The notes under the pieces were generated by a model. The model was not told the DNA's origin, searched no databases, and worked only from the letters and a program-made list of their open reading frames with translations. DNA of 63,713 nt, counting the filler, from Calcarisporiella thermophila CBS 279.70 (Eukaryota; Fungi; Calcarisporiellomycota), in assembly GCF_041956535.1 (NCBI RefSeq). It is 8 parts of 8 records of this genome, joined end to end, with 100 filler letters (N's around TTAATTAATTAA, not from the genome) between each part and the next. Parts side by side here need not be neighbours in the genome. Positions count along the whole stretch, not along the records: positions 22,972 to 38,583 come from NW_027192200.1; 7 more parts are not named here. One strand, given 5' to 3'. This document shows positions 22,972-38,584 of the stretch, one piece after another (the stretch's first letter is position 1; each line of letters begins with the position of its first letter). A program made the position numbers and the translations under genes.

Positions 22972-25313
22972 ATTATGATGATATTAGTTGTTTGGCTTCG
23001 CTATTCACAGCCCCAAGCCACTCAGAGCATCTCTTTCAAACTCAGTTTTTGGATTGGGCTCGCCGACTCTCTGTATAGAGCAACCTATATCATTAGAAAA
23101 GCCGAGGATTTTCTCGATGATGTTGTACCCACAAATATTTGGCTTGCCAGAATTATCTTATGGTCTTTCGTCTTTTTTCCCATGTGGTTTTCTCTTCTCA
23201 CTGTGAGCATTGCTTTCGATCTCCAGCTCTCTGCTTTTCACAAAAATATTAGCGTGGTGCGGTTCCAGAGGTGGTATCTTCCGCTATCCACATTTTTAGC
23301 GTTCAGTCTATCGTCACCACAGCTATTCTGTGGTAAAGCGTGGTGGAATCCAAAAAGCGTATGTGTTGGATTACTCGATGCTACTTCACATCGTCATTTT
23401 ATGAAAGAACTCATTTTTTTAGAAATATATTGGCACCGATTGGTCACCTGAATTTGAACTTGCCACGACTGTATTGTACAATATCATTGTATTAGGCGGC
23501 ATTTTATACTCTTTTATTATTATATCTATCGGCGTTATATATGTTTTCCGGACAATTTTTGACTCACGTAGAGAACGACTTCATCATAGAAGTGAGGATC
23601 GTAATAGAGAACGACTTGTTATGATGTCAGTGATTCGACTTCTTGGATACCCTTTAGTACTCATCATAACTATGCCAGCCGAATGCATAATGAGAATAGT
23701 GTTCATTACACACAACCGATTCACTCCTTTCGGCGAAATTACTGATAGGGCGAAGGCAACTATAACTGGTATGCAAGGCATATTCAGTTTAATTATCTTC
23801 TTGTTTAACCCGACATTTTCGAGTGCACTTGGAGAATTTTCATTTTTCAAAAACCGGAATGTACACCATTCTAGCTCACAAAGCATTTCAAACGCATCCA
23901 CAAAATTAGGTGGGAGAGATTCGGCTCTTCGGTTTGAGCCACAAGAAAGTGCTGCTGTCAAATATGTTCCTAATATTGAGAAACAGCCTTTGGCATCACT
24001 TCGGAAAGTAAAATTTGAAAATGAGGGAGAAAGGAAGGATGTAGCAGAAGCTGATATTCAATTTCAACCGAGATCCTCAACAATAGCAGGTCAGCTACAA
24101 GTACTATTCTCTTCAACAGATATTCCTGATCAACAGGAAGTGGGAACCGAAAGTAAAATAATTTTTGGGAGAAAATTTTGTAACGAAAAAGGTAATTGTC
24201 GTATGATATTATATATAGACTAAGTTTTCTAAAGAATTGTATATATTAAATAGTAATACATTATATTTTGCCAAATGACGAAATGGAGATAGATCGTTTA
24301 ATAAACCAGCATTATTTGTTTCGGTCAGTATCTTTCAATTCATTTCGATACATATCGAATGAAACTCACCTTTCAGCTCGCCTTTTTTTTAGACGTCTAT
24401 TCAAGAATCATAATTTTCTCTCTCCAGTACAAATCGGTTTAAAAAATGGAGCAATGGTATTGGATGTTGGGTAAGTAATAAAAGAATATTTTCAAGATTA
24501 CCTTAAATTCACTATGAATTATTTAATAAGATGTGGCCTAGGCACCTGGACCATGGAAATGGCATCCGATTTTCCGGCCAGTTATTTTTATGGTATTGAT
24601 ATTTGTAGCACATTTCCCCTACGAATCGTACCTGAAAACTGCAGCTTCCAAGTTGCAAATATCCTTGACAAACTACCATTTATGGATGGATCACTTGACT
24701 TCATATATATTCGATGTCTGAATCTTGGCATATATCAAAGCGAGTGGCCAACTGTAATAGAGGAAGTTGTAAGGATTTTGAAACCGGGAGGATATTTAGA
24801 AATGGTAGATATTGGTACGTACTGTATATAATGATAGTCAAGGAGATCCTAAGGTCAAAACTCATATTTATTATCTATTTTTTATAGACTATGCTTTTCA
24901 GGGTGAGGGCAAAGCGTTCCAAAAATTTTCGGAAGGAAGTGAGTATATATTTTTCTCAACTTTAAAATATTGAATAAAAATCGAAATGTTTTACAATAGT
25001 TTATAATACTCTGCGTGCACGCGATATCAACCCTTCATTGGCACATAAAATTTACGAGTATTTGAAGTCAATAGGGATGGAAGAGGTACAATCTCGGCGC
25101 GTAAATCTACCAGTTGGCAAATCTTCTGGAGAACTTGGTGAACTTGGTTTGGAGAGCTGGGTGCAATTATTAAATTCTTTGAAGCCTCATCTTGCTCAGG
25201 TGATGTATATAAGCAGTGAGGAATACGACGAATTGCAACAGGATGTTTATCAAGAATTGATTGAAAATAGTACTAAAATTGAAATAGTATGTACCTATGG
25301 TAAAAAGCCATAA
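22972..25313 (+). CDS. Git3/cAMP-receptor-like 7TM GPCR fused to a LaeA-like class I SAM methyltransferase (5' end probably in gap)
   Basis: TM motifs IGLADSLY, WFSLLTVSIAFDL, RLLGYPLVLIITMP and QGIFSLIIFLFNP. In-frame introns at 23359-23422, 24192-24253, 24324-24392 and 24470-24530 give GRKFCNEK|VIHYILPNDEMEIDRLINQHYLFR, LDVGCGLGTW, FYGIDI, LPFMDGSLDFIYIR and RILKPGGYLEMVD. Confidence 0.8.
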
Positions 25314-25415
25314 ATATAAATGGATAAATTAAAGAACGTTAAATAAGAGAACATATAGAAAAAATTAGCAATTTTAATGAAAATATTTCGTTATACCAGG
25401 TTTATTTAAGTAAAT

Positions 25416-28400
25416 AATTCTTACTGAAGCCTAGCGTATGCGACGACTTAAGGGAATTGGACAAGGCAAAGTCAGCAGTCCACGCTTCACGATGATGAGG
25501 CCGATTTATTGGATAAATGAGCTGGTACAAAGAAATAAGAAATAGTAAACAAAAAAAAAATATCGTACGATTATCTGAACGCGATTTTGCTATAAATATG
25601 TTTCCTCGGCCGTCGCAAGAAGAGGGGAGGGAAATAACTCAAACAAAAAAACAAAAAAAAATTATTATAAAATTATAAAAAAAAAAGAAAATTTTGAGGG
25701 GAGGGAAGTGAAGCGTGGACTGCTGACTGCGCCTTGTCCATTTCCCTTAAGCCGTCGCATACGCTAGGCTTAAGTAAGAATTAGTCTGCGGACTTTGTCA
25801 GCAGTCCACGCTTCAGGATGATACAGAGGGACCTACTGTGTGTTTTCGCGGTCGGTCGAGAGGATCACACTGGTGATATCTACGTTGAACGCTCGATCTC
25901 TTCTGTAGAAGAGGTCGAAGGTAGATGACGATGCCCAATTTCCTAGTGTTACCACCGTGTCTACGTCGAATCCTCGTAATGCGAGCGTTGCACCCATCTT
26001 GCGTGCGTCGTGAGCGCGTAATTTGGATCCAGCAATCCCAAAGATTGACTTGATCCATTGATATAAGGTTGAAGGCTTGGCTGGAAGTCCGGTATTGGGA
26101 ATCAGAAAGATCTTTGTTGCTTCCACGAGTTTTCCTTTAGCTTGACACCTCCTACGATACTCGATGAATCACTCTACTGGGCACAAACAAGGGTCTGTGT
26201 GACGATGGAGGTGAAATTCTTTAACTACACGTTGATTCTTACTTGTCTCCTTTGGGCAATCGATTACTCCCCTCAAAGCCCTGTCGTTGATGACTATTGA
26301 CCGACAATCTATGTGATCCAAGTCTGAGACTCTTGAAAATGTGACTATTGCGAATAACCATGTCAGTTTGTACATGAGCGCGCGCAAATTAAGTGCTGAG
26401 TTTGTCGTCTTTAAAATGTTTAATGATCGGGGAGATGTCCACCGGTCTTTCAACAAGGTTGATAGGTGGTGCCTCTCTAGCTATTTCTCTATGAACCTCA
26501 ACAACCAAGGAGTCCTGATAAGAGTTTTCACCTGATTGAATTTCACTAATCGCTGAACAATAAAGTTGACAAGACTTTGCGGCTTTTCCTTGTTTGTGCT
26601 GCTCAACCAAATGGCTACTATTGCCGATGCCGGGTCTTTGAAAGGCGGGATGTAGTTTGCTACACACCACGCGATCCATTTCTTTTGCGCTGAGGAATAG
26701 TTGCGATGCTTGGCCAGTCCCCCTTTGCCTCATTGCAGCAATTCCTGTGTATCTAGAAAAGCGTTCTTTTTCCTCCACTCTTCCCTGAGATGCGCCAAGC
26801 GGTCAAATACTACGATTTGATCTTCAGTGGGTGCTTTGTCTGTGTTGTTGCCAGATGAATTGCCTTCTTCGGAATCCTGATCGGACCCTCCAGTTTCGTC
26901 TGTGGCAAAAAGGGAAACCATGGGGCTGATAGTCAATATGGAGTTATTATAGTTAGGTTCACTTGTTCCAACATCATCTTCCTAAGAACTCGTGCTCTCA
27001 TCCGTCCATGGCGGATTGGTATATTGGTTACCTTTTTTACCCAATTCTGCGCCAGAGCGTCCGTCGCTGCTGCTCCGGGCTCTGGGTATCTGGAGAAGAA
27101 CCTTAGGAAACGGTTCGTGAGCTTGTCTACGAAGAGATCGACTGTGTGGGGTCCCCATTTTTTCTCGATTCTTGAGAACACTGTCGTCTGTGAACCAAGA
27201 CTGGTTTGCCTTGATCTTTCTTGAAGCCGCGTCTGCTTCTGTGTTTAGTGATCCTGGAATGTATTCTGCTATCAGATGAATTCGCCGAGTCAAACATTCT
27301 GTCCAGATCTCTCTCGCTAGCGAATTGAGACGGGGTGATCTGGTACCACAGAAGTTGTTCACGTATGCCAACACTGTTGAGTTGTCGGTCCGAATCAAGA
27401 GAGTTATGTTCTTGAGGGCTGGAAAGGAGTGTAGACACAGCTGTATCGCCTTTAGCTCCTTCCAATTGATATGGTATTGACTCTCTGTTTCTGACCATGG
27501 CCCGCCTATGGTAAGGGATCCGAATTTCGCTCCCCATCCACTGTCTGACGCGTACGTCGTAGCGATTCCAGATGGCGCCGGAGGAAGTAATGATTTCCCG
27601 TTCCACTTTTTGAGCTCTTCTGCCCACCACTCTAGCTCCTCTAAAGCTTCCTTTGGGAGGATGAACGAGGCGTCCCAGTCTAGGTTGGTGTTCAGTGCTC
27701 TGATGTGTGCCATCATCAGTGACCTCGAAAACAGTCTTCCTGGCATTATTGCTGGAAAGGCTGCATTCAATGCTCCCAGAAATGCTGTCAATTGTCTAGG
27801 AGTTGTGAAGCCTGCATTGTGCAATCCGATGGCTGTGCAAGCAATGTCTCGTACCTTTTTCCTTGGTAACTTGAGAGATATTTTCCGCGTGTCGATGCTG
27901 AATCCCAAATGTTAGATCGTCTGGGTCGGGGTGAAGACCGATTTTTCCTGGTTAATCAGGAACCCTTATCTTTCCAACGTCTGGACTACTATCTGAGTAT
28001 GTTCCATCGCTTTCTGTCACGGGGGGGCTGCGATCAGTAAATCGTCCAGATAGCAACTCAAGCGGTCTTGTTGCCAGTGCGACTTGTTTTGCCAGGTCCG
28101 TTGTAGCGGTTCTTATGGGCAGACTTAATAAAAATAATATAGTAAATTGGTGAGGAAACATGAACAAAAACAAAGGAATTGAATAATCAGATGTTATAAT
28201 AATCAGACGATAAATTACTACGATCAGGAGATAAACGGCCTATTCAAAAACAATAAAAATATTAAGATTAAAAGATAAGATTAAATATTACTATTGAGCG
28301 AATTGGTTGAGGAAAGTTTAGGAATAACTTGAATGGTTCGTCCCGCTACATCTGACAACTATAGGTCGTGCTTCTTGGCAATTTTACTCATACAAGAGAG

Positions 28401-28925
28401 TAAAGATGAATTCATTGGGGGCGCCTCGTACCTCATTCCTTTCCTTGGAGGGTTCTCGTCACAGATCCCTTTCCATTCTTCCGAGGTCAGGTTAACATTT
28501 TCTTCGTTTGCTGATCTTTGCTCAAAACGTCCTGCAAGCTCTTGGGGACTCTTACCAATGTGTCTCGCGTATGGAAACTTTTGGAAATAGTGCGTCTTGT
28601 AGCTCCCTCACGGAATCGCTCTCTGATTCACTATGAAGAACTTCGGGTTGGGAATCCATCTTTAAACGGAAGTAACCAGCTCAAAACGGTCGAGGAATTA
28701 TCTTCAAGCCAACTCTTTTATAGTTAGAACAATCCATCTCGGATTTTCAGGTTATTTTGTACTTTATTTTTCTTCAAGTTTCTTTGGTTTTCTAGCACAC
28801 TGTTTTCTCTGTACCGGCTCATTAAACATAATAAGTTGGGCTTCGTCCTCGTGAAGCCGGGACTACTGAATTTAGCCTGTTCATTTTGCTTAAGCCGTCG
28901 CATACGCTGGGCTTAGGCAAGAAAT
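25416..28925 (-). mobile_element. Degenerate DIRS-type tyrosine-recombinase retrotransposon (gag relic, RT/RNase H, methyltransferase-like domain, YR)
   Basis: RNase H motifs ASDSGWG, HINWKELKA, RTDNSTV and NTEADAASR. MT-like WGPHTVDLF..DALAQNW..YTNPPW. YR motifs FSRVSDL, RAHDARK and GNWASSSTFDLFY. Terminal repeat at 25416-25490 and internal complementary region at 25708-25822. Confidence 0.9.
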
Positions 28926-29041
28926 ACACCAGGCTTGACATTTTCTAGTTTTGGGCATTAATACCAGGTCTCAGCCGCAGGACTGATTCTCTGGCTAACC
29001 CGTTTATTTTAAATTATCTAAGCAAAATACATAAGTAGAAA

Positions 29042-30382
29042 TTAAAAGTTGTTTGAAAATATCTTGTCTGCTTCAAGCGTCTCTAGAACGTCTGTACGCA
29101 ATGTAATAAGCACATTCAACCCACCCTCGGGCCAATGTAGTGGCGAAGGCAGGATAATTAGTGCACCTTCAAAAGGTAGAGGTGGTGTCATGACTCGTGT
29201 TGGCGTGCCGTATCCAAAGTCAACACCATAGATCGCAAATTTAGCCCAACTAGAACTCAAGACATAGCTTTCAGGAATATTTCTGGAGATTGCGGGATGA
29301 ATTATTGATTTATCCGGTTGCTTTTCTATCCATTCTAAACTTTGACCCAAGTATATGTTGTTGACTTGATTAATTGCGGAGCGAATGGATAATGCCAGGC
29401 GACCAACTTGTTCTTCACTGGAAACAATATCGGCTGGAAGCCTCGTGAGCTTGCAAATAACTAGTGATCCAAATGAGTTGGCCGGTAGTTGTGGCTCAAA
29501 TTTGGGGCGAGTATCTATTACTATTCCGCAGGTAACTTCTTGGTCGCCATCAACTCTACGCGCTCGTGTGATTGCGCTCCAAAGGTGCGCAAGTAGGGCA
29601 TCATGCGTCGATATCCAAGCTTCCTTGTCGTCTATTTTGCACGCGGCTGCGGCCTTGAGCTCTCTTAATGCTTCTTTTGAAAACACAAAGCTTCGCATTT
29701 CTAGTTTTGCTGCATTTTGTGAAACCTCTTCGGAGACTTGTGAATCCACTTCGAAATCGGGCGAGTAATCCGTGCCATCGACATTTCCTCTCGGGGTGAT
29801 AGCACTAGGGTCCCACATTATTTTGTCGTACCCTATACCACGTGTCACTTGTCCCCAAAGTTTTAGAAAGAGATCAACGGAAGAAAAATCTGCAATACGG
29901 TGGTGCATGTTGATGCCTAATGCGACGGATCCGCAAGGATAGCGTGTGAGGCGAGCAGCAAACAGAGGGGATGGCAGTTTTTGTGCAAAGAGGCCCATTG
30001 GACACAGATCTTCGGCAACTTCTGCTGGTTGAAAAGCAGAAGAACCGGCATCGGGAAAAGTTGAGGTTGTTTGTGCTACAGAAAAATGCACCCCCGGCAT
30101 AGAATTTCGCTCGAAAGAAATCTCCCAGCTATTGTCTGCGATTGCGCGGAGTAAACCACTTACAACGGGAATGATGTCGATGGTTTGCTTTAGAGAATCA
30201 AGTAGTTGCCAATGGGGCATAAACTCTTCTTTGGAGCTTAAATTCGATGGTTTCTTGAAATAGCACACAACACTAATATACATCGGAAGAGTCACAGATT
30301 CGATGCCGGTAAGCCGGATGGGCTTGGACGGGAGTGTCGTGGTGATGGAGGGCTTAATGCAGAAGTCGTGGAGGATTTTCAT
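29042..30382 (-). CDS. BAHD/transferase-family CoA-dependent acyltransferase (intronless)
   Basis: HXXXD motif (HHRIAD), DFGYG motif, ISTHDALLAHLW and SSW. Confidence 0.92.
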   Translation of the reverse strand: MKILHDFCIKPSITTTLPSKPIRLTGIESVTLPMYISVVCYFKKPSNLSSKEEFMPHWQLLDSLKQTIDIIPVVSGLLRAIADNSWEISFERNSMPGVHFSVAQTTSTFPDAGSSAFQPAEVAEDLCPMGLFAQKLPSPLFAARLTRYPCGSVALGINMHHRIADFSSVDLFLKLWGQVTRGIGYDKIMWDPSAITPRGNVDGTDYSPDFEVDSQVSEEVSQNAAKLEMRSFVFSKEALRELKAAAACKIDDKEAWISTHDALLAHLWSAITRARRVDGDQEVTCGIVIDTRPKFEPQLPANSFGSLVICKLTRLPADIVSSEEQVGRLALSIRSAINQVNNIYLGQSLEWIEKQPDKSIIHPAISRNIPESYVLSSSWAKFAIYGVDFGYGTPTRVMTPPLPFEGALIILPSPLHWPEGGLNVLITLRTDVLETLEADKIFSNNF

Positions 30383-31448
30383 TATTACAAATAATAATAT
30401 ATGTTTAATTATTCCTCGTAATCAAGGCTCATCGCTAAACCCTCTGTTTTCTTTTTATATTACAGTCGCGTAATCCGTTTCCACGGATAAATCTTTCTCG
30501 TTATCGTTTTTCTAGCATCGAGACACGATTCGGATCCAATTTTGACACTTGGGATAGATTTCTGACAAGTGTTCCAGTAGTATGAAAGCATACTCTGGTT
30601 TTCGTCTTGTACTCTCCCAAGAAAATTACTCAAAGTAGTATACTTTTATATGACTCGCTAAGTATCGAGTTAGCAGCTGAGTGTTGAAATTGCTATTGGA
30701 TAGATTTTAGGAAAATTTATGTTCATATTGAATATGACAGAGTTAACATATATGGCAGGTTTTGTTGTCATGGGTCGTGATACTTCTTTAATACAAATAA
30801 AGCAAAAAATAAAGGGAGTGATCCTCGGCTCTACAAATGAAAATACCGGACTACAATACCGTTTAAAGTACATCAAGGATTTATGGATTTGGTAATCAGG
30901 TAAGCATATGATGTGATGTGTTAAGACAGAGTCTGGGCGCTAATCAACACTTAAAAATGGGCGCATGCAAAATAACTTCCAGGGATGCTACAGTATGCAT
31001 GATTCATATTCAATGATCCGATTTATGTAAGCAGCATTGCTCCCCATTCTAAAAGTTAGATTTAAATTAGTATTATGACATTATTTGAGAATATTATCTA
31101 ATTTGAGAGTCTCATTAATACGAGTCATAGTAGTAATAGAATATATTTTCTGATAATGGAGGGGCGCTCTTCGAGAATTCGATAATAATAATGTAACGAT
31201 TTTGATAAGCAGGAATTTTGTAATTTTGAATACTATGATATTGTGTTTACCAGCAAAAGGTACTCAATAGAAGATTAGCTTTTTCCACATTATCATTATT
31301 ATTGGAAATAAATCCATAAAAATAGAGAACCTATTCTTTTAATTTTGCTTTTACCATACTCGAAATATCTAGTTGATCTTGTATATCTCTTGACAAATCA
31401 GTCCTGCATGTCCCCTTTTTTCTTATAATATTCCCTTTATATTGCGCC

Positions 31449-33434
31449 ATGAATACGTACCTTTTTATTGCTGTTCTATTGGCGTCAACATTTGTCATAG
31501 GAACCTCCAAGCTGTTAGGTGAAACGGCGGAAAAACGGATCGAAAGTTTCGGACCCGTTATATCGAATACTCAGATTTACAAAACTGAGGAAGCTTCAGA
31601 AGTGCGACAAGGCCCATATGACCTCAAACAACAGGAGGTCTTGGAAATAGCACGCCAGTTTGCATCAACAAAGCTGACCAACTCGGAGTTCTTGGTGAAA
31701 GACATCTATAAATCTCAAATAAATGGGGTTACTCATGTCTATTTGCTTCAAGTAATTGATGGAAGGGAAGTGGTTAATAGCAATATCAACCTTAACGTCG
31801 ATGCAAACGGTCGAGTTATCTCTCACGGCAACTCGTTTTTCCGCGGCAGAAACACGTTCAAAAGACAAGCTATACCAATTGACAAGGCCACTGGCGAAGT
31901 CAAGGCTCCTACCCTTGACCATTTTGGCGTCCTAAAATCGCTCGCAAAGTATCTTCATACAGAACTAGCCGACCCAGAAAATATTACTATAGAAACTGAA
32001 TACTCTCCGGATGGAAAACCAATAATGCGGCTTACCAACGTGTCCTTCGCGGTCCCTGATAGCCAAGTCCTGATGCGCCAGGTCCTGATTCAGACGGAAA
32101 ATGGTCATCAAATTCAACCTGCCTGGGAAATAGAGGTTGAGATGGAAAATAACTGGTTCCAAGCATACATTCACGAGGACAATGGAAATGTACTCTCAAT
32201 GGTTAATTGGGTGGCTGATGCTTACTACAACGTGTTCCCATTTGGGCAAAACGATCCATCAGAAGGGCCTCGAAAAATGCTTAAAAACCCACAGGATCTG
32301 ATTGCTTCACCAAAAGGCTGGCATGTTCAGGGTGACACTAAGAATTTCACTGAAACCATTGGAAACAACGTTTATGCCTATGAAAATCTTGATGGTCCAT
32401 CGTTTCCAAGCTGGAAGGGAAGACAACGGGCAAATGGGGGTGAAAATCTAATATTTGATTTCCCACTCGATCTTTCACAAAACCCAAAGACCTATCTGAA
32501 TGCATCGATTACCAATTTGTTTTATTGGACCAATCTCATGCATGACCTCTTCTATCGCTATGGTTTTGATGAGGTCGCTGGCAATTTCCAAGAAGACAAC
32601 GGAGGCCGTGGCGGCAAAGGGAATGATGCGATATTCGCAATAGCTCAGGGTGCAAGTATACCGGCCGGTACCGAGATTATACTTCCACCCGATGGTCAGC
32701 CCGCTAGGATGCGTCTATATGTATGGACCAGGCTCAGTCCATACCGTGATGGTGACCTTGACGCAGGTCTTATAATACACGAATATAGTCATGGGATTAG
32801 TAGTCGTCTCACGGGTGGTCCGAATAACGCAAATTGCCTTAACGCAGGAGAAGCAGCAGGTTTGAGTGAAGGGTGGAGCGACTTTTTTGCTACCATTCTA
32901 CGTACAACAGCCAATCACACTCGTGCTTCAGAATTTGCCATGGGTGTTTACGTGAATGGCAAAGGTATTCGTAGATACCCGTACTCTACTAGCTTCAGGT
33001 CCAATCCTGAAACTTATGGAATCATGAACAACTTATCTTATGCCGGCGCTCATCCTAAAGGCACAGTATGGGCTAACATGCTCTATGAAGTCTATTGGAA
33101 TCTGGTTGATGTGCATGGTTTTAATCCAGAATGGTTTCCACCCATTACTACGGATTGGAATGAACTGCGAAAATATATCACTTCTAAAGGCAATACGTTG
33201 ATGTTGCAAATTGTGGTAGATGGCCTCAAACTGCAACCATGTCGTCCCAATTTCACGCAAGCTCGCGATGCAATTTTACAGGCAGAAAAATTACTCACTA
33301 ATGGTAAATTTGCTTGCGATATCTGGAAAGGTTTCGCTAAGCGCGGGCTAGGCATTGGAGCTAGAGTTATTGTTGATAACGGATCCGGGCGTGAAACACG
33401 CGAGGAGAGCTTTAAGTTACCACAAGAATGTTGA
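31449..33434 (+). CDS. Fungalysin (M36) secreted metalloprotease (intronless)
   Basis: Signal peptide, FTP propeptide GVTHVYLLQVIDGREVVN, TIGNNV, YGFDEVAGNFQ, HEYSHG zinc motif, GLSEGWSDF and IWKGFAKRGLG. Confidence 0.95.
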   Translation: MNTYLFIAVLLASTFVIGTSKLLGETAEKRIESFGPVISNTQIYKTEEASEVRQGPYDLKQQEVLEIARQFASTKLTNSEFLVKDIYKSQINGVTHVYLLQVIDGREVVNSNINLNVDANGRVISHGNSFFRGRNTFKRQAIPIDKATGEVKAPTLDHFGVLKSLAKYLHTELADPENITIETEYSPDGKPIMRLTNVSFAVPDSQVLMRQVLIQTENGHQIQPAWEIEVEMENNWFQAYIHEDNGNVLSMVNWVADAYYNVFPFGQNDPSEGPRKMLKNPQDLIASPKGWHVQGDTKNFTETIGNNVYAYENLDGPSFPSWKGRQRANGGENLIFDFPLDLSQNPKTYLNASITNLFYWTNLMHDLFYRYGFDEVAGNFQEDNGGRGGKGNDAIFAIAQGASIPAGTEIILPPDGQPARMRLYVWTRLSPYRDGDLDAGLIIHEYSHGISSRLTGGPNNANCLNAGEAAGLSEGWSDFFATILRTTANHTRASEFAMGVYVNGKGIRRYPYSTSFRSNPETYGIMNNLSYAGAHPKGTVWANMLYEVYWNLVDVHGFNPEWFPPITTDWNELRKYITSKGNTLMLQIVVDGLKLQPCRPNFTQARDAILQAEKLLTNGKFACDIWKGFAKRGLGIGARVIVDNGSGRETREESFKLPQEC

Positions 33435-34139
33435 AGTTCGAGTAATGGCAAAACACATTAAAATATATAATTTACAAAGGCTTTATGGCTTAAGTGGCTA
33501 TGGTTGTAAAATATTAATACAATTATAACCAAAATTAAAAAGAGGCTCGCTCAATCCGCAAATTTTCGGTTCGTTGGAATTGCTGCGTCGCTTAAAATCG
33601 AGTATTCAGTTATTGAGCAGAAATTGCACGCAAGCGCGGGATTACTACAGAAATGAGCGTACATAAAGCTTTGCTAGATTCGATAAAGCTGTTTCTTGCA
33701 CACACAACATCCATCTTATAGTTGCATACAGCAGAGCGCACTAAATAATTATCCCAATGTTTAACTGAGTAATGCCTTTTCAGTGTCGTTTGTTTATTTC
33801 CGCCTGCATGGACGTGGTAAAATTTGAGCCTGAGAAAAACAGGTGTAGAAATAGAGTGGTAGGCATTGCATTCTGTTTGAATTTTGGCTTGGATTAATTG
33901 CCTCATTGCCACAATACTAAGTTTCGTCAAGTTAAGTAAACAATTTCAATGTAAAACATATGAATCTTCCAAACGTGTTCATATGCAGTTCTGGGAAAAC
34001 ACGAGTCATTCACAGCACCATTCCTTTGAAGCGGCTAATAATGATGAATCGCAGAGGCTCATTCTGAATGTAAATCGCTTAAGCCCGCTCCATTTTGTTC
34101 TTGCCATTGGTGTTGTGTTAACCTAGGTTGGCAGCATGA

Positions 34140-34651
34140 TATTATCTACGAGGGAACTCGAGCAATTACGGGGCCATTCCTTGCGAAAATTGGGCGCTAC
34201 CAGAGCTTAAGTTGCAATAATTACTGGAACTGATGAGGCGGTGGCTCTTGTTCTCTGTTTTTTCATAGTTTACTTGTCCAACCGAAATGGTAAGCATTAT
34301 GCACTCTTGATTGCAGAATATGCAATTACAATCGTATCGATGCCCTTTCTCTCAGTAGTAGATACACTGTGGCAAGCAGTGGTGCTGGTGATTGCTGAAC
34401 GATTTGGTAAAACAGTACAATCTCTGTCCCGTGACACGGTGCTTGCTCAAGCTGGGAGCAATCTTGGACTGGGGAGAGCATTTGCATATCATGAATCTCT
34501 CGATGAGTCGGGTGCACTTTTCGGACCACTGATCGTTGCTAGTATGATCGCGCTCTCCGGCTACCGTTTGGCATTCATTGTTCTTGCCATTCGGGATACT
34601 TGCATAACTGATGGTATTGTGAAGGAGTTTGAAAATATTAGACCCAAATAA
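34140..34651 (+). pseudogene. Truncated prokaryote-like MFS transporter pseudogene
   Basis: YEGTRAITGPFLAK..(frameshift/stop)..ERFGKTVQSLSRDTVLAQAG..GLGRAFAYHESLDESGALFGPLIVA. Only the N-terminal half is present and it has no introns. Confidence 0.65.
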
Positions 34652-35226
34652 TTATTTAATTAATTAAATTCTGTGACCTATTATATTTTAACAGAAAAAT
34701 TATGTCGAGTAGGAGACTAATAATAATGTAAACTTTACACTTGTTATCCCATATATCCCTGACATTAAACAATAATTTATGTAAGTCCCAATGCAAAATA
34801 CACTTCTAAAAAAAAAAGAGATTAAGCATTAAAAGTAACAATACAAAAATTTTTTTTGCAGGGAGGAATTATTTGAGATTGGAGATTGAGGCATTAGAGC
34901 CGACAGCATAAACATAGTCACGGATCGATATACTTTGTTAAAATTTTAACTAAGATCTTTTAAGTAACCCTTTTCGGGGGAACAGTGAAAATAGGTTGTG
35001 ATAAAACTACAGCTCTTAGACTATTTTCAGTAGTATATTAAAGGAAGAAAAACTGGTTTCCCAGGGTGCTGAGTTTGGAAATATCCATATTTATATTTTG
35101 CTGTTTTTGATTATAAGGACATTATTGAAAATTTAACTCACTTTGTTCATTTATTTGATTATTTTCTAACTCCTCATTTATTAAAACAGCTTAACCATTA
35201 CTTGTGTTTTTTAATCAAAAATAAAA

Positions 35227-35730
35227 ATGAAACCTCTTTCAAACAATATCCGCACTAGCATTATTCAGCTCGCTAAAGAGAGAGAGTCCTCTTATCAAAT
35301 CGCCAATGCATTGGTCATTCATTTCACTACCGCAGCTAAGATTGTAAGAGAAGAAGTAAATCGACCCCCCGATCTTAAAAGGCGATTCGCTGGCCGCTCT
35401 TGTATTTTGAGTAAGAGAGAAGAGAGGAAGGTAGTATCGTTGATAACTTTGGGTCAGTGCAAAAACTCAACCGATGTGAGAAAATTTTTCAAAGAGGAAT
35501 ACAACAGAGAATTGACCGCTGATACCATGAGGAGGGTAATCCAAAGAGAAAAATATTGATTCAAGTGCGCCCAAAGAAGCCTCTTCTCTCAGCTGGACAC
35601 CGTAGTCGGCGCCTGGAGTTCGAGAGAAGGCATTTAAATTGGGCTGTGAAAGATTGGAAGCGAGTGATGTTTTACGATGAGACTAAATTAATGTTTTCAA
35701 ATGCAGCAGGAAAGCAATACCAGCGCAAGT
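35227..35730 (+). mobile_element. Tc1/mariner transposase relic
   Basis: HTH region, GR-x-IL motif, then frameshifted KKPLLSAGHRSRRLEF..WAVKDWKRVMFYDETK. Confidence 0.85.
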
Positions 35731-35897
35731 GATTTTTCAAAAAAAAAAGTACCCAGTGAAACTAATATTTATCCTTTAGACTATGGTGGCATATAACTCT
35801 GAAAATCGTGTAGGGGTTGCAGTTTTATCTCAACATAGTTTCAGTTTTCCTCTGAATGAGGTAACTGAATTATTGATATTTTAACAAAGAATATCGA

Positions 35898-37070
35898 TTA
35901 GTGACTATGATTTTGCGGTCGGCTGTAAATTTTAATATTCTCAGAAACATGACTTGCTACGGTAGTGCGAGGACAGTTGAGATCGTCAGTCCATTCTTCA
36001 CTACCGACACAGTGCCAACAAGTAAACAACTCGTTTGGATCTACCATCTTTTTAATCGCTTTTAGGCGAGGATAATTATCACCAAAGTAGGATTTTTGCC
36101 ACTCTGGATCGTTCCGATCGGACTCGTTCATATAACAACCAGAATCAGGGGTAATCTCTTTAAGCAACTGGGTTGCACGTGTTGTCACATCATTACGAAG
36201 ATTTATCTCTTCTATCGTGACATTAGCTCCCCAGCTACTTCTTAAAATTACGTGTAATATCGCCCTCTGCCAGGCCGGATTAACCGAGGTGTCATTGTAA
36301 TTATTTTGTGCAACAGCATTTCCAGCGAAAAAATGACTTACTGTCAGCCGATCGATAAGAGGTGCGTTATGTACTTGCTTGAATGAGTCAGTTAGTTGAT
36401 CAAGCGATTTATTGGTTTCAAAGTTACTTTTGGGGATCAATCGTGATCCGGAAGCTGCACTGCCACCAACAGGGTCTGTGCATGAATTGTTGTTCATGCA
36501 TTTCAAGGTAAAATACCAATCGGTATACTTGGAGAAAGCAGCCATTTTTTCAAACGCAAATGTGGACCCTTTATGTCTATTCACATAATCTATCAGTGGC
36601 AAGAAGGTTGAGTTGGCATTGATCAATTGGCGCTCGGATTAAGAAAAAAGATGTCAAGGGATTCCTCTATTAGAAAGAAATAGCCTGCCCAACCGGCATC
36701 TGGCATTGATGGCAGAAGTCACAACAGTTCACGAGTTAATCCCTTGGTGCTAGCAGTGCCATTAGTTTGAATGGAATAGAAAGCAGCAGTTACCTCATTG
36801 AGTTCTTTATGGGTTTTATGCGTAACCGATACCACAAATTCAAATGTCCCGCCACCACACCGCGCAAAGCCCAAAACAAATCTTTTCTTTGACAAGAGTT
36901 GGCCATGCGAAGTTTTCCATTTGCGGCGACAAATTTAAATTCCAAGATATTATCTGCATTCAGTCCGAGGAGAGATGAAATGGCACTGTGGCCTCAACCT
37001 TGAACTTAGCCACCAGCAGCTCCCACCGTCCGTGACGAGACGCCTACCACGACTAAGCAACGTTCACCAG
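35898..37070 (-). pseudogene. FAD-linked oxidoreductase (berberine-bridge-enzyme-like) pseudogene lacking its 5' part
   Basis: TVGAAGG*VQG*GHS, GLNADNILEF and DLFWALRG carry stops/frameshifts. The C-terminal BBE region SVNPAW..GCYMNESD..YFGDNYPRLKAIKKMVDP..CWHCVGS is intact. Confidence 0.85.
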
Positions 37071-37073
37071 CAG

Positions 37074-38584
37074 TTATTGAAGGTGAGTAAGGTATGATGC
37101 ATCGATGCATTTATTTCGAAGTACCTCCTCTATAGCCTCAATAACCAATGGCTCATCCATGACCCAATAGAAGCTATTATTATCGCGGTGCAGGGCACAT
37201 AAGTTGTAAATGAATGAAACCTTGCCACGATGAAGTTTGAATGCCATAACCATGCGACAAAAAAGAGGTGCGATCTCCTTGTACTTTTCAATTTTGCTTT
37301 CAATTTCTGCAACTAGGTCCACTCTCAACAGTTGAATAGTCTGATTCATAGCTTTATCAATTAATTCTTGCTTGAATCCAGTACCAGTATCGCATAAAGC
37401 AGAGAGCTCTTTAATGACTCTGGTTCCAAATCGAGCACGTCCACTGAGCTTCTGTCGCTTGGCATCGGCAATTACGCAACCATCCAAGTTAAGATTCCTC
37501 TTTAACATTTTCTCCACAGCCTCACCATCACATGATGGGAAGTTGACAATCTTTAAAAAGTTCTCAGGCTTGCCGGTCGCCATATAGACATGGTCTGCAT
37601 TGCCAAAAGATAGTGAGGTTCCAAGGACAATTAAAGTCGCGCGTATCCTGGAAACTGATGAACACAAAGGCGTGAGAAAGCCACGACGATATATGCTCTT
37701 TAACATTAACTTGTTGTCCATTAGATCCTTCTCGCTCTTGTTGACTGCTGATGGTGCAATAAACCGACCTTTCAGGATGTATTCTTCTGCTATATGCGCC
37801 TCATCTAATGCAATTGCGAGTCCTCTATTGCCGATCTTCTCCGCAATTATGTTCTGAACTCGTCGGAACATTGCTCGAATTGTAATGTTATCATACACAC
37901 GTAGTGCTTCCACTAGTTCTCCGATTGTTGACATTCCATTAGTAGTCTGCTCGCGGAAGAACTGTTCTGGTGAGAGATCACTGTTAATGTCGAAGAGCAT
38001 CAACAGGAACAACAGGCGAGCTAGGAACTCTAGGTTGATGCGATCTTCGATTAAGCCTTTCAGCCTGCTGTCCTTGGATAATACCTGATCAAATGACTCT
38101 GGAGGCTTCTCATATACCCTGCGATGAAAATCATAGGCTTCTTTCGCGAGATTGTCAAAATTTGGATCCTGAAATCCCGGTGGTTTGCGAGAGTGTCGAT
38201 CAGTACATACAACGTACACAACAAAGTGATGTCTTGCCAAATCAACTACTGTGGCTGTTTTCCCTGATCCTGACCGAGCGATCAATGCTACAACGCAGTG
38301 GTCAGTTAACTTGCTAGCATCGCCGTTAACAATATCAAGCAAAGTTTGAGGATTATCTGAAGTTACTGTTGGGTCCATGTCCAACAACTTTCCGAGCATT
38401 GGTAGGTTGATGTCTGCCGCTGTATGGCCATATGGTAAAATGGATTTATAGAAGCGGCCGAATATTTTCTTTTGACTCTGCTCGACGCTAGCTTTATCCA
38501 CTATGTGAGCATTGTGGCTCTTTTTCGATATGGAGATGATTTGGTTCAGTGTTGCAGTAATTCGGTCATGTTGAACGAATATCN
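37074..38584 (-). pseudogene. Crinkler-type P-loop NTPase gene fragment (both ends missing)
   Basis: Walker A ARSGSGKT, Walker B IALDEAH, GTSLS, GRARF and MDEPLVIEA. It starts at a gap and stops abruptly against the BBE pseudogene. Confidence 0.65.

Follow-up and report, generated by a model that had tools for sequence, protein, structure and literature searches.

A predicted fusion of a GPCR-fold seven-transmembrane domain with a LaeA-like methyltransferase in the fungus Calcarisporiella thermophila

Can a receptor-like membrane domain and a LaeA-like methyltransferase be parts of the same fungal protein, and what would such a protein do? [quoted passage not shown] The question is raised by a gene of Calcarisporiella thermophila that lies on the + strand, at positions 22972-25313, of the stretch of 63,713 nucleotides that we analysed (the window), in a piece corresponding to the end of scaffold MU987573.1. 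The fungalysin ORF of the window has an exact match on the same scaffold, and a degenerate DIRS-like element begins about 100 bp past the stop codon of the gene. An initial annotation of this DNA had described a GPCR-like seven-transmembrane (7TM) receptor fused in frame to a LaeA-like SAM methyltransferase.

Gene structure and position of the domain junction

The exons of the gene, read from the sequence and checked by tblastn with its paralogues, are seven in number and are separated by six GT-AG introns of 60-73 nt (Table 1). They total 1953 nt, equivalent to 650 codons plus a stop, and the phases agree across every junction. The paralogue P0006 (704 aa) is collinear with the gene, its residues 22-679 being matched in order in a tblastn search against the window (E 2e-145), with 65.6% identity in exon 1 and 54.8% in exon 7, the latter over residues 576-679. 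An N run directly upstream of 22972 marks an assembly gap, 5' of record position 875021 of MU987573.1, that cuts the 5' end of the gene and hides the first ~21 codons and the start, and the deposited annotation of the locus is a 125-aa gene model that covers the exon 7 region alone, that is, the 3' tail. On sequence grounds, we consider the gene to be real and intact, with a predicted product of one polypeptide of ~670 aa in three parts: a GPCR-fold 7TM domain, a linker, and a methyltransferase. The single frame joined through GT-AG introns that the initial annotation proposed is thus retained, with a correction to its five ORF fragments, which were incomplete in that they missed the small exon at 24888-24938 and the in-frame intron at 24324-24392.

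Table 1. Exons and introns of the fusion gene, with the protein features that each one carries. Helix positions in exon 1 are taken from the P0006 model.
Feature	Position	Strand	Content	Basis
Exon 1	22972-23358	+	End of TM1, TM2, TM3, TM4, first strand of the ECL2 hairpin; equals P0006 residues 22-149	
Intron 1	23359-23422	+	64 nt, GTATGT..TAG, phase 0; position common to P0006 and P0144	Gene models of P0006 and P0144
Exon 2, first part	23423-23839	+	ECL2, TM5, basic ICL3, TM6 ('GYPLVLI'), TM7 ('FLFNP', 23801-23812), helix 8	7TM alignment, model, tblastn
Exon 2, middle	23840-24154	+	Hydrophilic linker, ~105 aa, free of Met and of stops	
Exon 2, end	24155-24191	+	'KIIFGRKFCNEK'; its final base opens a split codon	
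Intron 2	24192-24253	+	62 nt, GTAATT..TAG; position common to four deposited paralogue models	Deposited models
Exon 3	24254-24323	+	23 aa, 'IHYILPNDEMEIDRLINQHYLF', the LaeA-type N-terminal motif	
Intron 3	24324-24392	+	69 nt, GTCAGT..TAG, in frame and free of stops; spliced at the equivalent place in paralogue models	Paralogue models
Exon 4	24393-24470	+	26 aa; ends with the first half of SAM motif I ('VLDVG')	
Intron 4	24471-24530	+	60 nt, GTAAGT..AAG	
Exon 5	24531-24814	+	94 aa; 'CGLGTW', 'YGIDI' and 'LKPGGY' of the methyltransferase Rossmann core	
Intron 5	24815-24887	+	73 nt, GTACGT..TAG	
Exon 6	24888-24938	+	17 aa; an equal 17-aa exon occurs in paralogues	tblastn of P0018 and P0008
Intron 6	24939-24999	+	61 nt, GTGAGT..TAG	
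Exon 7	25000-25313	+	Methyltransferase C-terminal cap subdomain, with 'YGKKP' as its last residues; stop TAA at 25311-25313	

Exon 2 carries TM5-TM7, helix 8, the linker and the opening strands of the methyltransferase fold, and therefore the junction between the two domains lies inside one exon. Translation bears out what had been proposed for this region: no stop interrupts the exon between TM5 and '...IFGRKFCNEK', the linker included, intron 2 leads into '(V)IHYILPNDEMEIDRLINQH', and no Met occurs from TM7 to that motif. Retention of intron 2 would put an in-frame stop at 24221-24223. In P0006, the equivalent of the end of exon 2 is modelled as a hairpin of two short strands (E73-76 and E79-82 in model m2afba4b82b84) with which the confidently folded methyltransferase domain begins, and in the linker/methyltransferase alignment the R and F of 'GRxF' do not vary. 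The exon that ends in '...GR(R/K)F(C/L)xxxG' also holds TM5-7 in the gene of the window and in three deposited models (P0006, P0011 and P0144), and in P0018 one exon of 414 codons encodes the whole set of seven TMs, the linker and the beginning of the enzyme. As judged from these gene models, the GPCR domain and the catalytic domain share one reading frame here and in four deposited models. The linker has conserved islands, including 'VKF' and the Ser/Thr-rich 'SQSISxASTKL', and its equivalent in P0006 is modelled as disordered, with a pLDDT of about 40-45.

Fold and relatives of the two domains

The exons of the window were searched one by one, and the fold tests, as well as the test for Methyltransf_23, rest on paralogues. 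Residues 1-325 of P0006 served as the stand-in for the 7TM fold tests, and the 7TM exons of the window are 65% and 45% identical to this modelled paralogue (tblastn). Its AlphaFold2 model (pLDDT 83.6, pTM 0.81) gave 370 Foldseek matches in the PDB at E<=0.001, and all 50 of those listed are class A GPCRs, with TM scores of 0.45-0.76. In the wide VIA-align search, all 50 listed rows are GPCRs or GPCR-like domains, with Z scores from 22.5 to 19.9 that clearly exceed the background of helical bundles (about 13-14), and the Atlas shape search placed the model at TM 0.71-0.76 to 7tm_1 clusters. Among the features of the domain are an ECL2 hairpin, a third intracellular loop that is basic, and a helix 8, which in the model spans residues 280-289 and follows TM7. 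N279 and P280 of TM7 ('FNP') are nearly invariant in the 7TM alignment and would be equivalent to the NPxxY position of class A receptors; by eye, the near-invariant residues of this alignment are retained in the gene of the window. A hand count of charges in P0006 gives ~17 K+R on the cytosolic side vs ~9 outside. As modelled, the 7TM part has a GPCR fold, in agreement with the GPCR-like label that it had received.

The narrower label of a Git3/cAMP-receptor-like protein was not borne out by Pfam. No Pfam GPCR family matched the 7TM part, either in the exons of the window (up to E 1) or in full-length stand-alone paralogues (up to E 10), and Git3, GPR_Gpa2_C and Dicty_CAR were among the families for which no match was obtained in the 7TM exons or the stand-alone paralogues. 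A profile of the 7TM family found no match among PDB sequences. By language-model features, the domain scores 0.96 to fungal GPCR-like clusters, and 13% of the members of the clusters near it carry Dicty_CAR; this proximity is a lead and does not amount to membership.

The enzyme part could be assigned with Pfam. Exon 5 matches Methyltransf_25 (2.1e-11, above the cutoff) and Methyltransf_11 (1.7e-9); it is the only exon of the window scannable for Methyltransf_23, to which on its own it gives 0.043, and this family matches P0006, P0008, P0011 and P0018 at 1e-13 to 6e-12. The spermidine-synthase family is absent from the Pfam match lists of the window exons and the paralogues. SAM motif I ('LDVG|CGLGTW') and 'YGIDI' are both present, the former intact, as had been stated, though split by intron 4. 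All 14 of the near-invariant methyltransferase residues are kept in the gene of the window, and the catalytic-core and SAM-pocket positions conserved in the wider family are retained in every fused copy. The P0006 domain is modelled with a class I fold (pLDDT 84). These sequence and model data indicate that the enzyme part is an intact class I SAM methyltransferase and belongs to the LaeA-like superfamily of fungi; the Pfam matches, the relatives and the conserved residues uphold the earlier description of it as LaeA-like.

The motif GRx(Y/F)...LPND..E..RL..QH is readable on exons 2-3, and the fusion has it in common with the LaeA/LAE1 and Llm/'TAM domain' proteins ('GRxF/Y ... LPND..E..RL..QH'), which are likewise class I SAM methyltransferases. 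The closest relatives of the enzyme are methyltransferases of Mucoromycota, with 35-41% identity, followed by ascomycete 'TAM domain methyltransferase' and LAE1 proteins (E 1e-17 to 1e-18), which are only 28-34% identical; those named LAE1 show 33-34% across about half of the query. The enzyme is thus placed nearest to Mucoromycota methyltransferases and not as an orthologue of LaeA, a soluble protein of the nucleus with velvet proteins as binding partners. Its structural neighbours are mostly small-molecule methyltransferases, including phosphoethanolamine N-methyltransferases, and such neighbours would suit a role in metabolism no less than one in signalling. The complex prediction for the 7TM and methyltransferase domains of P0006 gave 0.11 (mark 0.34), a value that bears neither for nor against docking.

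Fused paralogues and their distribution

The gene belongs to a family. Four full-length fusions are annotated elsewhere in the C. thermophila genome (P0006, P0011, P0018 and P0144), and at four further loci the DNA encodes a full-length fusion although the annotation is short, so that the genome holds at least nine fused paralogues with the gene of the window included. The deposited annotation under-calls the family, with fragmentary models at the locus of the window gene and at four other fused loci. A long tblastn HSP at L002 12143-14056, considered as an intronless processed copy, was rejected; it has stops at the intron positions.

Five intron positions of the enzyme half are common to the gene of the window and the four deposited models, and intron positions agree in the four loci annotated short as well. 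In the methyltransferase tree, the fused copies form one clade (support 89/93) apart from other Mucoromycota methyltransferases, and the paralogues fall into broadly similar groups in the 7TM tree. These sequence comparisons are consistent with the derivation of the fused paralogues from one old fusion. According to the 7TM tree, many paralogues no longer have the enzyme, and therefore the 7TM domain is able to work alone. Since the paralogues are only 23-65% identical in protein, synonymous sites are saturated.

Contrary to the expectation that the architecture would occur in other early-diverging fungi, it was found only as paralogues within the C. thermophila genome, and sequence searches found no homologues of the 7TM part outside this genome. 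Because the fusion family is known from a single genome, all of the conservation evidence comes from paralogues. The Atlas search with the whole protein, which covers clusters of at least 50 members and thereby shows neither absence nor novelty, returned no cluster with the full architecture, and no published description of a GPCR-fold/methyltransferase fusion was found in the literature searched.

Possible roles of the fusion and known systems compared with it

We give an even chance to the following interpretation as a whole: the protein is a single fused polypeptide stemming from an old fusion, in which ligand sensing by the 7TM domain, transmitted via the linker and helices, controls a cytosolic methyltransferase, making it a 'GPCR-bigram' with a new catalytic partner. 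The N-terminus would be outside and the C-terminus cytosolic, a topology favoured by the hand count of charges, and this would place the enzyme under the membrane; the 7TM domain would sense an extracellular or membrane ligand, and the movement of TM5, TM6 and helix 8 could control the activity of the methyltransferase, its access to substrate or its release. Phosphorylation or cleavage of the linker may be an alternative route of control. Several observations weigh against this interpretation: the deposited 125-aa model and the start hidden in a gap at this locus, conservation seen among paralogues of one genome, a 7TM part unmatched by Pfam GPCR families and by PDB sequences, the small-molecule type of most structural neighbours of the enzyme, and the many paralogues with a 7TM domain alone. 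The more specific proposal that the GPCR-fold receptor directly gates the attached LaeA-like methyltransferase, or frees it by cleavage, and so provides a new route from receptor to methylation, is a tentative one, and we hold it to be somewhat doubtful.

The GPCR-bigrams of oomycetes and some protists are multigene families with an unknown mode of action; they comprise GPCR-PIPK (including RpkA of Dictyostelium), GPCR-INPP, GPCR-AC, GPCR-PDE, GPCR-TKL and AP-GPCR, so that the reviewed partners are lipid kinases or phosphatases, cyclases, phosphodiesterases, kinases and a protease (PMC6033456). A methyltransferase is absent from the reviewed types ('methyl' occurs 0 times in PMC6033456), whereas the fusion described here has a SAM methyltransferase, occurs in a fungus (Mucoromycota), and has a 7TM part that matches no Pfam family. 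With such a partner, GPCR-enzyme fusions would gain a new output chemistry.

A second parallel is the VapA-VipC-VapB complex of Aspergillus nidulans, which is tied to signal-dependent development and in which LaeA-like methyltransferases are kept at the plasma membrane until a signal frees them (PMC4299510). Both systems have methyltransferases of the LaeA-like superfamily at the membrane, and the fusion may be a covalent counterpart of the complex. In the latter, however, the tether is non-covalent and made through a FYVE zinc-finger protein, whereas in C. thermophila it is a covalent GPCR-fold domain, from which release of the enzyme would require proteolysis. By analogy with VapA-VipC-VapB, the family suggests that LaeA-like enzymes may act at or from the membrane; a family that ties the enzyme for good to a receptor-like membrane domain makes a natural 'Rosetta stone' for these methyltransferases, and in a thermophile it also provides a tractable system. 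No substrate has been established for LaeA-like enzymes (PMC4299510), and, if receptor gating is true, the tethered enzyme could help to find the long-sought substrates.

In its layout, the fusion also resembles NHMT (AN4663), the fungal N-terminal histidine methyltransferase for LPMOs, in which seven N-terminal TM helices are followed by a soluble seven-beta-strand methyltransferase and the TM part is required for activity (10.1101/2022.10.03.510680). NHMT is single-copy and ER-resident, its 7TM part is reported to resemble GPCRs in neither structure nor sequence and gives BLAST matches almost exclusively in Pezizomycotina, and its enzyme domain is spermidine-synthase-like (10.1101/2022.10.03.510680). 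The published description of NHMT thus sets it apart from the C. thermophila family, with its GPCR-fold 7TM, its Methyltransf_23/25-type enzyme and its multiple copies.

NHMT is nevertheless the fungal precedent for a 7TM segment that places a methyltransferase (10.1101/2022.10.03.510680), and the 7TM part of the fusion might likewise be a membrane anchor or scaffold that brings the enzyme to its substrate, such as a lipid head group, an amphipathic metabolite or a membrane protein, and not a ligand-gated receptor. The small-molecule and phosphoethanolamine N-methyltransferases among the structural neighbours of the enzyme point in this direction, as does P0027, a stand-alone member of the fused clade that begins with 'MGNVKST' and a basic run; this start resembles a myristoylation signal and suggests that membrane placement itself is important. 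An anchor would nevertheless require less than a full GPCR fold equipped with ECL2 hairpin, helix 8, the conserved TM7 'NP' and the TM3 'FDL', and the strong diversification of the 7TM family, with its many persisting stand-alone copies, is typical of sensory receptor families; we therefore rate a mere anchor as rather unlikely. A reading that we find improbable reverses the roles of the domains, the methyltransferase-like part being a SAM/SAH sensor or docking module that tunes G-protein/arrestin signalling and methylates no target. LaeA-like proteins indeed lack an identified substrate and yet require their SAM motif (PMC4299510), and the conserved Ser/Thr-rich linker could be likened to a phosphorylated GPCR tail. 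Against this, the conservation of the catalytic core and SAM pocket throughout the fused copies is expected of active enzymes, and no feature specifically indicates sensing.

Whichever role the family has, the copy in the window might not be a working fusion, either as a silent or decaying paralogue at a transposon-rich scaffold end or through retention of intron 2, which would leave a 7TM protein alone. The fusion is unannotated at the locus, where only the 125-aa model is called, the 5' end falls in a gap, the DIRS-like element follows closely after the stop, and truncated and fragmentary paralogues occur nearby. We nonetheless see little likelihood of this, given that about 650 codons are open over seven exons with six canonical introns and zero frameshifts, and that the family-conserved residues of both domains are all retained; the assembly gap explains the missing start, and a partial gene at the gap could explain the short model.

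One reading frame across receptor-like and enzyme halves

The exons of the gene, read from the sequence and the ORF list, are separated by six introns of 60-73 nt, all of them GT..AG, and sum to 1953 nt, or 650 codons plus a stop, with phases that agree across every junction. In tblastn against the window, residues 22-679 of the C. thermophila paralogue P0006 (704 aa) align collinearly at 45-66% identity (E 2e-145), and the paralogues P0011, P0018 and P0008 behave in the same way. In exon 2 a single open frame links TM5 to '...IFGRKFCNEK' across some 105 aa of hydrophilic sequence, and the last Met before the enzyme lies within TM7, with none downstream; both points of the initial annotation hold on the translation. 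SAM motif I is also intact as claimed, though intron 4 divides it. The gene structure described there was correct, except that it overlooked an exon of 17 aa and an in-frame intron. If intron 2 (from 24192) is retained, ten extra codons are followed by a stop at 24221-24223, which would yield a predicted stand-alone 7TM protein with a tail; judging from the sequence, alternative splicing of this intron could be a putative switch between fused and unfused forms.

A fungalysin ORF of 661 aa (31449-33431) matches exactly on scaffold MU987573.1 of C. thermophila assembly GCA_041956535.1, and positions 22972-38583 correspond to record positions 875021-890632, the end of the scaffold. A run of N stands in the record immediately 5' of 22972, so the 5' end of the gene is lost to the assembly gap, within which the absent start codon falls. 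The deposited annotation at the gene covers just a 125-aa product (24802-25313), which is why the window exons have no identical match among database proteins.

Coordinates of the gene under study, its neighbours and the fused loci annotated short (window positions unless a record, L002 or L003, is named)
Feature	Position	Strand	Remarks
E1	22972-23358	+	sequence reading
E2	23423-24191	+	sequence reading
E3	24254-24323	+	sequence reading
E4	24393-24470	+	sequence reading
E5	24531-24814	+	sequence reading
E6	24888-24938	+	sequence reading
E7	25000-25313	+	sequence reading
Degenerate DIRS-like retroelement	25415-28926	mostly -	begins ~100 bp past the stop codon of the gene
DIRS-like terminal inverted repeats	25415-25502 and 28839-28926		77% complementary
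DIRS-like internal complementary copy	25708-25783		93%
Tyrosine-recombinase piece	25833-26126		Phage_integrase 4e-4
Tyrosine-recombinase piece	26169-26456		weak Flp_C
308-aa ORF	26982-27908		without Pfam match; RNase H-like by eye only
BAHD-type acyltransferase ORF, intronless	29042-30382	-	Pfam Transferase 8e-49
Fungalysin M36 metalloprotease with FTP propeptide, intronless ORF	31449-33434	+	2e-143
MFS transporter fragment	34241-34651	+	7e-6, under Pfam cutoff
ORF with Sleeping-Beauty-type transposase HTH	35227-35559	+	8e-4, under cutoff
Berberine-bridge-like oxidase, C-terminal part, intronless ORF	35898-36626	-	BBE 8e-13
475-aa ORF	37074-38501	-	without Pfam match; annotated as 441-aa protein (L005 15626-16951)
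Fused locus	L002 5598-8040		annotated 337 aa; tblastn: whole 7TM-linker-methyltransferase
Fused locus	L002 12143-14603		annotated 528 aa; tblastn: as above
Fused locus	L002 19174-21124		annotated 454 aa; tblastn: as above
Fused locus	L003 6491-9000		annotated 357 aa; tblastn: as above

With the exons of the window gene searched one at a time, exon 5 by itself exceeds the Pfam thresholds for Methyltransf_25 and Methyltransf_11, and the paralogues match Methyltransf_23 too, in agreement with the Methyltransf_23/25 assignment first proposed. In a 44-row family alignment, the window gene keeps 14/14 near-invariant methyltransferase residues. Outside the species, the enzyme half is closest to Mucoromycota SAM methyltransferases (35-41% identity); ascomycete proteins called 'TAM domain methyltransferase' or 'Secondary metabolism regulator LAE1' come next at 28-34%. 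The model of P0006 residues 330-704 (pLDDT 84.4), standing in for the window gene, is disordered to about residue 385 and folded from the 'KW..GRRF' hairpin on, which locates the start of the folded enzyme on the receptor exon, where it had initially been placed. The structures nearest to it are class I methyltransferases, the majority with small-molecule or phosphoethanolamine substrates.

Fused paralogues and their history

A phmmer search with exon 2 against 1.84 billion representatives matched 22 proteins, all from C. thermophila except one weak, repetitive match, and a profile search for relatives beyond this species reached no other organism; the same architecture in other early-diverging fungi, as raised initially, was thus not recovered. 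The 7TM part, the linker and a Pfam-recognised methyltransferase domain occur together in four annotated proteins: P0006, P0011 (743 aa), P0018 (764 aa) and P0144 (674 aa). Four more (P0026, P0147, P0008 and P0029) are shorter as annotated, and their loci are full-length fusions at the DNA level, with a possible frameshift in the L003 locus, between P0006-equivalent residues 215 and 229. The genome holds at least nine fusions, window gene included, and the deposited record annotates the family incompletely.

When deposited proteins were mapped onto their own loci, all within this single genome, the enzyme half was split at the same five positions in every mapped paralogue (exons of 23, 26, 94 and 17 aa, then the last exon), and the window gene has the identical pattern. 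The exon with the terminal 'GR(R/K)F' stretch always codes TM5-7 as well; in the P0018 gene (L007 1501-2742) the 7TM-half introns are lost and one 414-codon exon holds the whole 7TM part, the linker and the initial methyltransferase strands. Since TM5-7 and the enzyme start share an exon in all mapped models, the receptor/enzyme junction is never an intron. The fusion is a conserved architecture and not an accident of the window locus. Linker identity among paralogues is only 23-41%, yet the alignment contains conserved islands such as 'S-x-S-I/V-S-x-A-S-T', 'V-K/R-F' and 'F-S-x-x-D-I/L-P'.

Maximum likelihood places the fused methyltransferase domains together in one clade (support 89/93), to which neither the other Mucoromycota methyltransferases nor two further C. 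thermophila methyltransferases belong. Three short gene models also fall in this clade, at least one beginning within the linker. A stand-alone methyltransferase, P0027 (VTP21DRAFT_11468), lies inside the clade as sister to P0018. The grouping of paralogues in the 7TM tree is broadly similar, with stand-alone 7TM copies nested among the fused ones. Both trees suggest a single ancient fusion, after which copies were duplicated and the enzyme half was lost repeatedly, as exemplified by the tandem pair P0002/P0006.

Fold, topology and possible role of the receptor-like half

The 7TM half gave no match in Pfam or, even as a profile, among PDB sequences. An AlphaFold2 model of residues 1-325 of P0006, taken as a stand-in for the window gene and built on an 18-row family alignment (pLDDT 83.6, pTM 0.81), has seven helices, with a beta-hairpin separating helices 4 and 5 and a short additional helix following helix 7. 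Foldseek returned 370 PDB matches at E<=0.001, the best 50 of which are all class A GPCRs; each of the 50 matches listed by the VIA-align exhaustive scan (Z 22.5 to 19.9) is either a GPCR or the GPCR-like LYCHOS domain, and the ESM Atlas shape search points the same way, as do language-model features. On this concordance, the modelled fold is GPCR-like, as the initial annotation held, whereas its Git3/cAMP-receptor assignment was not borne out, there being no Pfam match. Near-invariant residues in the family alignment include 'FDL' in TM3, 'YP' in TM6 and 'F..NP' in TM7. With hydrophobic cores marked by hand on P0006, the side that bears ICL1-3 and the tail has about 17 Lys+Arg, nine of them in the TM5-TM6 loop, and the other side has about nine; this bias and the GPCR fold together predict an N-out, C-in topology with the enzyme in the cytosol.

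The gene is one reading frame with both domains intact, in an old architecture kept across many paralogues, and we infer that the methyltransferase would be controlled by, or tethered to, the receptor domain. The fusion belongs to a known class, the GPCR-enzyme fusions. GPCR-bigrams join a GPCR domain to a PIPK, INPP, AC, PDE, TKL or aspartic protease domain (PMC6033456), a set without the methyltransferase partner found in C. thermophila; full-text literature searches, Calcarisporiella literature included, found no description of a GPCR-methyltransferase fusion, and among ESM Atlas clusters of 50 or more members none has the 7TM-linker-methyltransferase architecture. In the Aspergillus VapA-VipC-VapB system, the plasma membrane retains LaeA-like methyltransferases until signal-triggered release (PMC4299510). 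The main rival, that the 7TM part is simply a membrane anchor for the enzyme, seems to us rather unlikely, at perhaps one chance in a few; it has a precedent in NHMT, a 7TM histidine methyltransferase similar in layout but unrelated (10.1101/2022.10.03.510680). Residues 1-15 of P0027, 'MGNVKST' and then a basic stretch, look like an N-myristoylation and polybasic membrane-targeting signal, and may provide a putative alternative route to the membrane. Such a signal hints that the fused clade needs to be placed at the membrane, which is compatible with receptor control and with anchoring only.

Neighbours at the scaffold end

The gene adjoins a degenerate DIRS-like element with broken ORFs, and this scaffold end is transposon-rich. 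Also at this end, neighbouring the gene cluster, lie the acyltransferase, fungalysin and BBE-like ORFs; the MFS transporter fragment and the ORF with the transposase HTH are probably gene and transposon remnants.
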